From IMG/VR virus record IMGVR_UViG_3300023174_000039, positions 186,001 to 250,000 of that record: DNA of 64,000 bases. The stretch is one strand, 5' to 3'. This document shows, piece by piece, positions 4,234-38,984 of this stretch; the stretch's first letter is position 1; the number at the start of each line of letters is the position of its first letter. Position numbers and translations under genes: made by a program. Below the pieces are notes generated by a model. It saw nothing but the letters and a program-made list of their open reading frames with translations, did not search any database and was not told the DNA's origin.

Positions 4234-4316
4234 ACACACCTTAGGACCGGTACTTGTTACCGATAGTGTGGTCCGGCTGCTGGACTGGCGTAACGATTCG
4301 CTACCGTGAAACCTAA
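4234..4316 (+). ncRNA. Candidate structured intergenic RNA
   Basis: Complementary segments: TTAGG 4241-45/CCTAA 4312-16, CACAC/GTGTG, GGACC/GGTCC, CGGTA/TACCG (two possible partners), GTCCGG/CTGGAC. Confidence 0.45.
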
Positions 4317-4390
4317 AGTGAGCATTATCTCTCCAAACTTGTTGTGATTATAACATATTGTGTGTATACTTACACACAAGGAGTATTTTT

Positions 4391-32510: not shown

Positions 32511-32580
32511 AGAGTTAAGACTGTATGAAGTTGACAGAAAAGGATTCAAGACCCGGGGGCAGTTCCCGGCAGGTCCACCA
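32511..32580 (+). ncRNA. ssrA: Permuted tmRNA, acceptor (3') piece; 5' end approximate
   Basis: GATTCAA-GAC-CCGGG-GGCAGTT-CCCGG-CAGGTCC-ACCA gives the T arm and 3' acceptor strand. TAAATA promoter at 32505-10. Confidence 0.9.
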
Positions 32581-32603
32581 TAAGGAGATTGAATAAATAC
32601 TAG

Positions 32604-32909
32604 ATGCGAATAAAAGAACTGACTGAATCATTTAACAAGTGCTATGATATGGCATGTAAAATGTATGATTACGCAAAGGCTAAAAATTTGCATCCTAAAC
32701 TAATACAAGTAGCAGATTATAAAGGCGATGGTTCCGGTGCTGATAAACGCTGGCAAAAACTACCGCAAAGAGTGTGGCAACATTATGTCACAGTAATCGG
32801 CAATAAAGTCTACGATCCAACTGCTAAACAGTTTGGTCCTGACAACGATACTGAATATAGTTTAGAAAGATTAGATGCTGACTGGGGACAACAGTATCTA
32901 ATTAAATAA
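32604..32909 (+). CDS. 101-aa protein encoded inside the tmRNA intervening segment; possible Cys-His-Asp (papain/transglutaminase-like) fold
   Basis: KCYDMA...QHYVTVIGNKVYDPTAKQF; TAAGGAG at 32581 and TAAATA at 32594-99. Confidence 0.75.
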   Translation: MRIKELTESFNKCYDMACKMYDYAKAKNLHPKLIQVADYKGDGSGADKRWQKLPQRVWQHYVTVIGNKVYDPTAKQFGPDNDTEYSLERLDADWGQQYLIK

Positions 32910-32922
32910 GTCTTTTTATGAT

Positions 32923-33105
32923 GGGCCTGACATAGATATCGATTGGGTCAAGAGTACGGAAATGGACAGTCCGGCAATGTAGAAGCCGTTAGGGTTGGGG
33001 GAACTTGGCCGAAGACACAAAAACCGTAAATGCAAACGACGAACAGTTCGCTTTAGCCGCCTAAACTCGGCTTAGGGTAGGAAATACCTCGTAACAGAAA
33101 CCACC
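32923..33105 (+). ncRNA. ssrA: Permuted tmRNA, coding (5') piece with tag ANDEQFALAA
   Basis: GGGCCTG pairs with CAGGTCC and includes G3:U70. GTAAAT-GCA resume site. Tag ORF 33032-33064 is GCA AAC GAC GAA CAG TTC GCT TTA GCC GCC TAA. Confidence 0.92.
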
Positions 33106-33133
33106 AAAAAAGGGCACTTTGGTGCCCTTTTTC
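33106..33133 (+). terminator. Intrinsic terminator, bidirectional
   Basis: AAAAAAGGGCAC-tttg-GTGCCCTTTTTT. Confidence 0.9.
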
Positions 33134-33192
33134 TTTGACTTCTTAGTATAAACGCTATATACTAGTTGATATTCATTTTATAAGGAAAAATA

Positions 33193-34202: not shown

Positions 34203-34742
34203 ATGAAAAAATTTGCATTCGCATCACTCTTGGCTTTGGCCTCTTTCGCTTCTTCTGCACAGTATGTGTCAGTTGATGTGGACCATGTAAAGACCAGTCG
34301 TGGTCAGGAAAGTTCTGCACAGTACATCCGTGCTGGCAAAACCATCAGTGGCATTGACTACGGTCTCCAAAGCCGCACAGGTGTTGGCAACAAAGGTGGC
34401 ATGTTCAACAGCCTAGAAGTCACAGCTGGCAGCAAACTGGGTTCTTTCGCGCCGTTCGTGGGCGTGGGCTATGACAATGGCTTTAACGGTTCACCTGCTG
34501 GTTCATACACATATGGCTTGTTGGGCGTAACAACTGGTGCCAAGGTTGGTCCAGGTTTTGCATTTGGTGGTGTCAAGACTCGACTGGGTTCTAGTGCCAA
34601 AGTAGAAACAAAACAAACAGTGGCGTTTGGTACTTACAGTTTACCCATTGCCAAGAACCTTGCACTCAACGTGAATGCAAGCAAGAGCTACCAAGACATC
34701 AAAGAAACAGCTTATGGTGTTGGCCTAGCGTTTGGGTTTTAA
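34203..34742 (+). CDS. Small outer-membrane beta-barrel (porin-like) protein
   Basis: Sec signal MKKFAFASLLALASFASSA; alternating beta strands; C-terminal YGVGLAFGF fits a BAM signal ending in Phe. Confidence 0.8.
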   Translation: MKKFAFASLLALASFASSAQYVSVDVDHVKTSRGQESSAQYIRAGKTISGIDYGLQSRTGVGNKGGMFNSLEVTAGSKLGSFAPFVGVGYDNGFNGSPAGSYTYGLLGVTTGAKVGPGFAFGGVKTRLGSSAKVETKQTVAFGTYSLPIAKNLALNVNASKSYQDIKETAYGVGLAFGF

Positions 34743-34768
34743 ATGTAATACTTAATAGTTACATTTAC

Positions 34769-34795
34769 AAAAAACCCGCACTAGGCGGGTTTTTT
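34769..34795 (+). terminator. Intrinsic terminator
   Basis: AAAAAACCCGC-actag-GCGGGTTTTTT. Confidence 0.9.
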
Positions 34796-34803
34796 ATTGG
34801 CGG

Positions 34804-34930
34804 TTGACTGAATATTCTGAATTTGCTACAATAGAAACAAGTTAAGAAATACAGCAAAGTTTGCAAAGCCCTTATAAAGAAAAAGGACTTTGCAAAACAA
34901 GTTGACAAGTAAATCACAAGATGTTATACT
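34804..34930 (+). promoter_or_regulatory. Tandem sigma70 promoters of the main tRNA/ncRNA operon
   Basis: TTGACT 34804/TACAAT 34827 and TTGACA 34902/TATACT 34925, both with 17-nt spacers. Confidence 0.8.
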
Positions 34931-35017
34931 AGAGACTAGTTAGGAAATAGTAGATCGAGACTGTTTCAAGAGTTCGTTAAAAATTCAATTTTGTATAGTA
35001 CTCGGATCCAATCCGGG

Positions 35018-35260
35018 CACTATATGTAAGCACATTGGGTTACCGCCCCAGTAGGTAATTTGACAAGAGATCAATCTGTGGCCGCACAGACTCTTCCAAG
35101 TTACATGAAAGATGGAAACGAAGCCGCAAGGTGGATACTGTATAATCGCGCTGGACCAGGTAGGCCTGTAATGTGTTTGACAAACAAGTCCGTGGACGAC
35201 ACGGTAGGGCAGAAAAAACTGCGATCTTTGTCCGACATCCTGATGTGTTTTCATATAGTG
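35018..35260 (+). ncRNA. Structured spacer RNA A
   Basis: Terminal helix CACTATATG/CATATAGTG plus AAGCACATT/GATGTGTTT; internal hairpins such as TCTGTG-gccg-CACAGA. Confidence 0.6.
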
Positions 35261-35267
35261 ATTTTTT

Positions 35268-35343
35268 GGTCTTAAAGTGTTCATGGACGCACGATGGCTT
35301 GTCACGCCATAAGAGTGGGGATCGTTACCCCCTAAGACCGCCA
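35268..35343 (+). tRNA. tRNA-Asp(GTC)
   Basis: ATGGC-ttGTCac-GCCAT; atypical T-loop ATCGTTA; CCA. Confidence 0.88.
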
Positions 35344-36030: not shown

Positions 36031-36034
36031 GTTT

Positions 36035-36228
36035 TTATATTGATAACAGTGTGTTAAAAACTCTTTGACCAAGGGCCCAACTGCTAGGGAATTATTGATC
36101 CAAAAACCGCTGAGCGGACGAAAGTTGCGGCGGACTGCTAGTCACAGTCACACATGTTTTTGGAAGGATGCTGGTGTAGCAATACAGCAGGGACCTTTAA
36201 ACACACAGCAGTATTGTTATCAATATAA
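36035..36228 (+). ncRNA. Structured spacer RNA E
   Basis: 14-bp perfect helix TTATATTGATAACA/TGTTATCAATATAA, then GTGTGTTAAA/TTTAAACACAC. Confidence 0.65.
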
Positions 36229-36235
36229 GTACTAC

Positions 36236-36326: not shown

Positions 36327-36355
36327 TTGACTTTCAATCATAAATAAACTACAAT
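36327..36355 (+). promoter_or_regulatory. Sigma70 promoter with nested TAAATA
   Basis: TTGACT 36327-32, 17 nt spacer, TACAAT 36350-55; TAAATA at 36341-46. Confidence 0.75.
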
Positions 36356-36365
36356 AGAAACTAAC

Positions 36366-36479
36366 ATGAAAACACAAAACTATTCATTTGCTAAGCCATC
36401 CATGTTTGTCCAGCCTTCAGCCTGGACGCATGCGAACGGTCGCGTGAATAGCATTCCAGGAGATCCGGGGTCCGTGTAA
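36366..36479 (+). CDS. Putative 37-aa leader peptide
   Basis: MKTQNYSFAKPSMFVQPSAWTHANGRVNSIPGDPGSV; starts about 10 nt after the -10 box and precedes the terminator/antiterminator. Confidence 0.55.
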   Translation: MKTQNYSFAKPSMFVQPSAWTHANGRVNSIPGDPGSV

Positions 36480-36504
36480 AGTACATTAGTATTCTACTCA
36501 AAGG

Positions 36505-36538
36505 ACCCTGGAACTAAACACTCCAGGGTTTTTCTTTT
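36505..36538 (+). terminator. Intrinsic terminator with an overlapping antiterminator
   Basis: ACCCTGGA/TCCAGGGT plus TTTTCTTTT; alternative pairing GGGGTCC 36467-73 with GGACCCT 36503-09. Confidence 0.82.
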
Positions 36539-36629
36539 AGTGCAATGGCAACGAGAGCCGGCATCACTCAAAACTGCAAATGGGCGGCCTGTAGGATGGA
36601 ACACTATTTGTAGTGTGAAAAATTACAGC

Positions 36630-36685
36630 GTATTAAAGCATTCTTTAAGAACAGGCAGCCTAAGTATTTTAGAGTGCTTTAATAC
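36630..36685 (+). ncRNA. Long hairpin spacer F
   Basis: 15-bp stem GTATTAAAGCATTCT/AGAGTGCTTTAATAC. Confidence 0.55.
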
Positions 36686-36708
36686 ACACATTCGTAAGAG
36701 TGTGTCGG

Positions 36709-36782
36709 GTATCTCTGGTGTAATGGCAGCACCGCGGTCTCCAAAACCGTCAGTCAAGGTTCGAGTCCTTGGAGGTACGCCA
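36709..36782 (+). tRNA. tRNA-Trp(CCA)
   Basis: GCGGT-ctCCAaa-ACCGT; CCA end. Confidence 0.92.
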
Positions 36783-36787
36783 CACAT

Positions 36788-36861
36788 GGGCTGGTAGTTA
36801 AATGGGATAACGGTGGCTTTGCAAGCCTCAGTTGGGAGTTCGATTCTCCCTCGGTCCACCA
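36788..36861 (+). tRNA. tRNA-Ala(TGC)
   Basis: ttTGCaa loop; G3:U70. Confidence 0.92.
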
Positions 36862-36869
36862 AATTAAAT

Positions 36870-36898
36870 TTGACACAACCGTGTGTCTGCTATATAAT
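36870..36898 (+). promoter_or_regulatory. Sigma70 promoter
   Basis: TTGACA-17-TATAAT. Confidence 0.82.
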
Positions 36899-38892: not shown

Positions 38893-38984
38893 GGAAGATG
38901 ATGCAGTGGGGTTGGTCCCGCGACTGGCCTTGAAAACCAGGTTCTCTTAACAGGGATGGGGTTCGACTCCTCCGTCTTCCGCCA
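38893..38984 (+). tRNA. tRNA-Ser(TGA)
   Basis: ctTGAaa loop; long variable arm; G discriminator. Confidence 0.88.

Follow-up and report, generated by a model that had tools for sequence, protein, structure and literature searches.

A putative leader-peptide attenuator ahead of a structured RNA and tRNA genes in uncultured aquatic jumbo phages

Phage tRNA arrays are usually treated as constitutively expressed accessories, and the presence of a promoter, a very short reading frame and a transcription terminator immediately ahead of such genes raises the question of whether their output is instead regulated, and by what. This question arises within a 64,000-nt stretch (hereafter the window) of the 331,654-bp IMG/VR contig 3300023174_000039, in a 9-kb tRNA region with 24 tRNA genes, all on the plus strand. 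The family-B DNA polymerase of the contig is 42-50% identical to those of Sinorhizobium phage Phosso, Agrobacterium phage Atu_ph07 and the Rak2/121Q-like jumbo phages. An earlier note on the sequence described a sigma-70 promoter, a near-leaderless 37-codon ORF with a single TGG codon, an intrinsic terminator whose 5' arm can pair with the last leader codons, and tRNA-Trp(CCA) as the next tRNA, and interpreted these as trp-type attenuation by which the phage may produce tRNA-Trp and downstream RNAs only when Trp-tRNA or translation is limiting, for example after host anticodon-nuclease attack. The observation itself is confirmed, as every element described is present in the window. The parts, all on the plus strand, are as follows.

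36327 to 36355, plus strand: sigma-70-type promoter, with the -35 box TTGACT at 36327-36332, a 17-nt spacer and the -10 box TACAAT at 36350-36355; the predicted transcription start is near 36362.
36366 to 36479, plus strand: near-leaderless leader ORF of 37 codons plus TAA, with the ATG 10 nt after the -10 box, a predicted 5' UTR of about 4 nt, and the single Trp codon (residue 20) at 36423-36425.
36380 to 36451, plus strand: predicted structured 5' domain inside the ORF, in which a long-range helix pairs 36380-36387 with 36444-36451 and encloses a hairpin (36408-36413 with 36422-36427) whose 3' strand holds the Trp codon.
36464 to 36473, plus strand: 5' arm of the antiterminator (Pa), UCCGGGGUCC, covering codons 34-36 of the leader and pairing with 36503-36512, GGACCCUGGA.
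36476 to 36497, plus strand: inner hairpin of the antiterminator (the Pb/Pc tier), containing the stop codon at 36477-36479.
36501 to 36538, plus strand: intrinsic terminator, with stem 36501-36512 paired to 36522-36533, a 9-nt loop at 36513-36521 and the U-run at 36529-36538; the stem is followed by UUUUUCUUUU, and the predicted energy is -16.3 kcal/mol.
36540 to 36708, plus strand: unnamed conserved structured RNA (here X RNA), abutting tRNA-Trp and with no promoter of its own.
36709 to 36861, plus strand: tRNA-Trp(CCA) at 36709-36782 and tRNA-Ala(UGC) at 36788-36861, the last genes before the next promoter at 36870-36898.

A promoter-like match alone is no better than chance in this region, with 18 found against 14.3 expected in 8 kb, and a simple terminator scan missed the terminator only because its loop limit is 8 nt. 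The minimum-energy fold of 36362-36545, however, does not contain the terminator but pairs 36464-36473 with 36503-36512 around the inner hairpin holding the stop codon (z = -3.9, with 0 of 200 shuffles folding as well), and promoter, ORF, arm and terminator are conserved together in 75 homologous loci. The next promoter, at 36870-36898, is a perfect consensus (TTGACA-17-TATAAT, 12 of 12) directly before tRNA-Ser and marks the end of the short leader, X RNA, tRNA-Trp and tRNA-Ala unit, with no promoter-like site between 36355 and 36870. Elsewhere in the tRNA region, 34800-35268 and 36031-36235 are promoter-rich stretches without tRNA genes or convincing ORFs, where further small RNAs may lie; the promoter at 34804 shares the TACAATAGAAAC discriminator with the leader promoter, and one RNA-library contig covers 36107-36182.

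Homologs were collected by pattern searches of IMG/VR. The 28-nt terminator core occurs unchanged in 13 other contigs; a pattern that frees the loop found 61 stretches, giving 48 non-identical elements; and two further patterns that free the two lowest stem positions, screened with a profile built from the family, added 27 more, for at least 75 sequence variants in jumbo-phage contigs. A pattern with a 10-N loop likewise found loop variants of the terminator, showing that the loop is not invariant. As members were first found by the terminator sequence, its own conservation is partly by construction. All members lie in tRNA regions and are co-oriented with the tRNAs. One contig (L021; L numbers denote the collected homologous stretches) carries two copies, at 158-244 and 4269-4344, of which one has no mid-ORF Trp and no X RNA behind it, while the other has both, together with a variant terminator arm. 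BLAST of the region against 50,697 cultured-phage records gave only tRNA hits and one chance hit, and no cultured relative in that collection carries the element. In the bacterial genome collection, 25 pattern hits were obtained, of which only two short MAG contigs are true members and a third (L089) is a terminator after a small basic protein gene; the element is therefore phage-borne and not a host chromosomal element.

The reading frame behaves as coding. Every one of the 48 members first collected, and 26 of the 27 later ones, has an ATG-initiated frame of 30-58 codons ending 19-38 nt before the terminator hairpin (22-33 nt in all but two), although peptide identity between groups is only 12-30%. 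Length differences among close relatives are in-frame, and pN/pS is 0.2-0.9 in nearly all pairs, with a third-position excess in the more diverged pairs. In 35 of 48 members the ATG lies 6-10 nt after a TTGACA-17-TAYAAT promoter, making the predicted mRNA leaderless or nearly so, whereas about nine members have a 5' UTR of roughly 50 nt with a purine-rich SD-like sequence (AAGAGA/AAGGA) 8-10 nt before the ATG. These observations bear on a possible RNA-only switch, in which the structured 5' domain would bind a ligand or a tRNA in the manner of a riboswitch or T-box and the open frame would be incidental. The conserved long-range and hairpin structures inside the ORF and the setting among tRNA genes favor such a reading; the long-range helix, read by eye, changes sequence between groups, for example CUAUUCA:UGAAUAG against UAUCACU:AGUGAUA. 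Nevertheless, the retention of the frame in 74 of 75 members, the coding substitution pattern, the SD-like sequences where a 5' UTR exists, and the absence of a match to T-box or any other Rfam family in permissive scans render it very unlikely; a T-box, moreover, has a Stem I with a specifier loop and a T-box antiterminator bulge without an ORF.

Conservation of the Trp codon had been named beforehand, together with that of the frame, as a point on which the proposal would stand or fall, and neither has been lost: about 70 of 75 members have a mid-ORF Trp (four of the first 48 lack it), and this residue and Met1 are the only columns conserved at 90% or more. In 42 of 44 members with a mid-ORF Trp, the codon is the 3' strand of a hairpin, 33-76 nt before the antiterminator arm and about 45-52 nt before it in most, which fits a pause hairpin with a stall site. 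However, there is a single Trp codon, with no tandem run in any member, and as Trp has only one codon, conservation of the residue cannot be told apart from conservation of the codon.

The same conservation is compatible with a nascent-peptide sensor, in which a conserved W-S ... N-S/D-R peptide would arrest the ribosome inside the ORF in response to a ligand or a phage or host factor, so that arrest rather than tRNA supply would set read-through. Amino-acid-level constraint is present, the W-S motif occurs in different nucleotide contexts (CCUGG, UAUUGG, UUGUGG, GCUUGG), and arrest peptides such as TnaC and SecM depend on a tunnel Trp. On the other hand, spacing from the Trp to the C-terminus varies from 16 to 33 residues, no C-terminal arrest motif such as RAGP or RAPP, or a terminal Pro, is conserved, and part of the apparent peptide conservation (N-S, G-S/R-V) is explained by RNA helices. 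TnaC-type Trp sensing, with its fixed spacing to a C-terminal Pro-stop and Rho-dependent termination, is likewise not matched, as the terminator here is intrinsic. A peptide-arrest mechanism is considered unlikely, although the constraint on the peptide means that it may have a role of its own. A search of PHROGs found no family for the leader peptide, and a homolog search returned only proteins named 'hypothetical protein', with no Pfam domain on record.

The antiterminator is supported by its conservation and covariation. A sequence complementary to the terminator's 5' arm is found in 46 of 48 members, ending from 1 nt inside the stop codon to 20 nt upstream of it, and its GGGUCC core is read as Gly-Ser in some members and as x-Val-Arg in others; the constraint is therefore on the RNA. 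When each transcript is folded up to the terminator's 5' arm, that arm pairs upstream in 47 of 48 members, with a median z of -4.0. The helix has three tiers: the outer Pa (GGGUCC:GGACCC); the middle Pb, of 4-5 bp; and the apical Pc, a hairpin of unrelated sequence from lineage to lineage at the same place in nearly every member; the stop codon lies in Pb (G-UAG:CUAC) or in Pc. On a covariance-model alignment of 74 distinct sequences, 92.3% of cells are paired, seven of 12 pairs and 72 cells changed on both sides, no shuffle in 500 reached the observed score, and sliding the partner by one column lowers pairing to at most 59.6%, although the alignment was fitted to the tested structure. All four Pb pairs show compensatory changes, for example GAAG:CUUC against GUAG:CUAC, and members whose terminator arm is AGACCC mostly carry GGGUCU, while those with GAACCC carry GGGUUC. 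A trp-style anti-antiterminator was also sought: the arm's probability of pairing with upstream sequence has a median of 0.54, with partners that differ between groups and no consistent structure, and predicted folds of the full-length untranslated RNA are mixed, with the antiterminator in 35 of 48 members and the terminator in 13 of 48.

The downstream genes do not bear out the specific link to tRNA-Trp. The first downstream tRNA is Trp only in the window's subclade and a few others; elsewhere it is Cys, Tyr, Ile, Glu, Leu, Phe, Pro, Arg, Lys, Asp or Gly, and one close relative (L008) has lost tRNA-Trp but keeps the element. By eye, no pattern was seen between leader codons and the identity of the first downstream tRNA. 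The constant neighbor is instead X RNA, present downstream in 44 of 48 members, either directly after the terminator or after one intervening open frame of under 60 codons. It carries invariant AACG.G and GGGCGG motifs, shows compensatory changes in 9 of 10 pairs of two helices, matches no Rfam family even in permissive scans, and by eye may also form a pseudoknot (AGUGUG with CGCACU across a GCCC:GGGC helix). The downstream genes start 15-30 nt after the U-run, with X RNA about 15 nt after the terminator or an SD plus ATG within 15-25 nt, leaving no room for a promoter. The intervening frames are SD-led and occur in L009, L017, L020, L027, L029, L032, L034-L036, L039, L048, L053, L057, L060 and L061, in at least three different families starting MTKIDYTKLNERI..., MTDKKIKQAEW... 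and MKDLDFRKQ..., all absent from the window. In L064, a tiny SD-led ORF of 15 codons with two Trp codons (MTTEEYWKWIHDNVQ), complete also in L033, lies directly after the terminator, between the attenuator and X RNA, with its stop embedded in a 7-bp hairpin; in L063 only its first codons were seen. It may be a second leader.

Other RNA genes share these neighborhoods. GOLLD RNA (RF02032, 192-213 bits) sits in the same tRNA regions of three relatives (L032:3512-3976, L054:3393-3857, L062:6187-6651), in two of which it lies about 200-250 nt upstream of the leader ORF, and a tRNA lies inside the match; no GOLLD is found in the window. The window does carry a two-piece (permuted) tmRNA gene at 32515-32586 and 32916-33156, with the tag ANDEQFALAA encoded at 33032-33064, which is 89-93% identical to the tmRNA that ARAGORN calls in relative L012; its two parts are separated by an extra ~330 nt holding a 101-codon ORF (32604-32909), which probably explains why ARAGORN missed it and why Rfam scores fall below threshold. 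A tRNA-Sec-like match at 38893-38980, between tRNA-Pro and tRNA-Leu, scores 36.9 bits against a gathering score of 47 and is not called by ARAGORN.

Evidence at the RNA level comes from Logan contigs of four metatranscriptomes, which carry no strand information and may include DNA, so that bridging contigs do not prove regulated read-through. A 173-nt contig (X25 record 28) covers 36362-36534 exactly and a second (X15 record 2) ends at 36534, both fitting termination in the U-run, and the first also fitting the predicted start, while two others (X19 record 18 and X18 record 11) cross the terminator, covering 36366-36597 and 36487-36693, which fits read-through. Word depth over X RNA exceeds that over the leader ORF region in three of the four libraries. 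The discrete 173-nt contig could also be taken to indicate a stand-alone small gene, encoding a functional 37-aa protein with its own promoter and a plain terminator, the upstream pairing being incidental or stabilizing the mRNA and the downstream RNAs arising by leak-through or from phage-specific promoters. The annotation of the peptide family as 'hypothetical protein' by gene callers is in keeping with this, as is an ATAAATA motif at 36341-36347 in the promoter spacer, close to the T4 late-promoter box TATAAATA and found at the same place, 22-29 nt before the ATG, in about 25 of 48 homologs, which could be a second, phage-type promoter overlapping the sigma-70 one. Against it stand the covariation of a helix that competes with the gene's own terminator, the conservation of the GGGUCC core in two reading frames, the direct abutment of downstream genes on the terminator in dozens of lineages, and the retention of the order leader, X RNA, tRNAs in 44 of 48 members; it is regarded as improbable.

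Altogether, the element is best explained, with moderate confidence, as a ribosome-dependent (leader-peptide) transcription attenuator heading a small operon for X RNA and tRNAs. In this view, host RNA polymerase starts at about 36362 and the ORF is translated from a 5'-terminal AUG; a ribosome following the polymerase to the end of the ORF holds the 5' strand of the three-tier helix, so that the terminator folds and a roughly 173-nt RNA is released, whereas if the ribosome is absent, slow or stalled further upstream, for instance at the conserved Trp codon in its hairpin, the antiterminator forms first and transcription continues into X RNA, tRNA-Trp and tRNA-Ala. The 25 nt from stop to hairpin in the window is, by inference, about the distance between a ribosome and the polymerase it follows, although in members where the arm ends 14-20 nt before the stop, a terminating ribosome would only just reach the outer helix. 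The switch looks two-state, efficient leader translation turning the operon down and poor translation turning it up. What the analysis establishes is the conserved parts and their geometry, the covariation of the antiterminator, the coding signature of the ORF, and the existence of both terminated and bridging RNA-library contigs; translation of the leader, masking of the arm by the ribosome, control of the outcome by ribosome position, the direction of the response and the physiological signal, be it Trp-tRNA supply, general translation capacity or peptide-mediated arrest, are inferred from sequence and geometry alone.

The interpretation given in the earlier note is thus partly supported: its attenuation logic agrees with the conserved frame, Trp codon and covarying antiterminator, but its link to tRNA-Trp is not supported, the logic is not strictly trp-like, and Trp specificity and the anticodon-nuclease scenario remain inference. 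The Trp-specific version, in which stalling at 36423-36425 would release the polymerase from a following ribosome so that tRNA-Trp and its neighbors are made when Trp-tRNA is short, is favored by the near-invariant Trp, its hairpin, and tRNA-Trp as the first or second downstream tRNA in the window's clade and some others. It is opposed by the lone Trp codon, the four of 48 members lacking it, and the variable downstream tRNAs, and is held to be unlikely.

Comparison with established systems clarifies what is new. Leader-peptide attenuators of enterobacterial amino-acid operons (trpL, hisL, pheL, thrL) share a short translated leader, an intrinsic terminator, a mutually exclusive antiterminator using the terminator's 5' arm, ribosome position as the presumed switch, and a hairpin around the regulatory codon that could act as a pause site. 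The present element differs from them in its phage host, leaderless ORF, single Trp codon instead of a run, absence of a consistently predicted anti-antiterminator, such that no translation is predicted to give read-through in most members, and cargo of a structured RNA plus tRNAs rather than biosynthetic enzymes. Rfam Trp_leader (RF00513) gives no hit at the element, and Thr_leader (RF00506) scores 15.1 bits against a threshold of 55 and covers the terminator only; a weak Trp_leader and family-model hit at 34712-34798 is a plain terminator after the ORF ending at 34742. In uORF attenuators of Firmicutes (vmlR, lmo0919, mef/msr leaders; for example PMC4335068), a ribosome that finishes the uORF likewise allows termination and one stalled inside it allows the antiterminator, making them general sensors of translation trouble rather than of one amino acid; those elements control resistance proteins in bacteria and respond to antibiotics, and nothing here indicates an antibiotic signal. 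The pyrBI and pyrE attenuators of E. coli also read the distance between polymerase and following ribosome, but with opposite sign, as in pyrBI a closely following ribosome blocks the terminator hairpin itself, whereas here the ORF stops 25 nt short of the hairpin and the ribosome would block the antiterminator. In Sinorhizobium meliloti, the terminated attenuator RNA rnTrpL and its leader peptide peTrpL can have trans-acting roles (PMC6614838; PMC7968998); here too the terminated RNA is seen as a discrete contig and the peptide is constrained, although no evidence of trans action was obtained. Finally, the T4 tRNA operon offers a possible parallel to X RNA, as it includes small stable 'species 1 and 2' RNAs of unknown function that are co-transcribed with tRNAs and released by tRNA processing; no leader-peptide attenuator is known to have been described there, and no sequence similarity was found in the cultured-phage collection.

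Literature searches found no such element described before, and this would be the first leader-peptide attenuator found in front of phage stable-RNA genes. The element is widespread, with 75 or more variants in IMG/VR, and short conserved parts of the 36340-36708 stretch turn up in freshwater, estuarine and marine metatranscriptomes, and it points to a new, strongly covarying structured RNA as the regulated cargo. A more far-reaching possibility, doubtful but compatible with the data, is that these aquatic jumbo phages carry a dedicated translation-state sensor, a leaderless leader peptide with a conserved Trp codon set in a pause-type hairpin, that switches on this RNA together with phage tRNAs when host translation or Trp-tRNA charging falters, for instance under starvation or tRNA-targeting defence; this would be feedback control of a virus-encoded translation toolkit. 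The attenuator would show that giant phages can couple the output of their own translation-related RNAs to the state of host translation.
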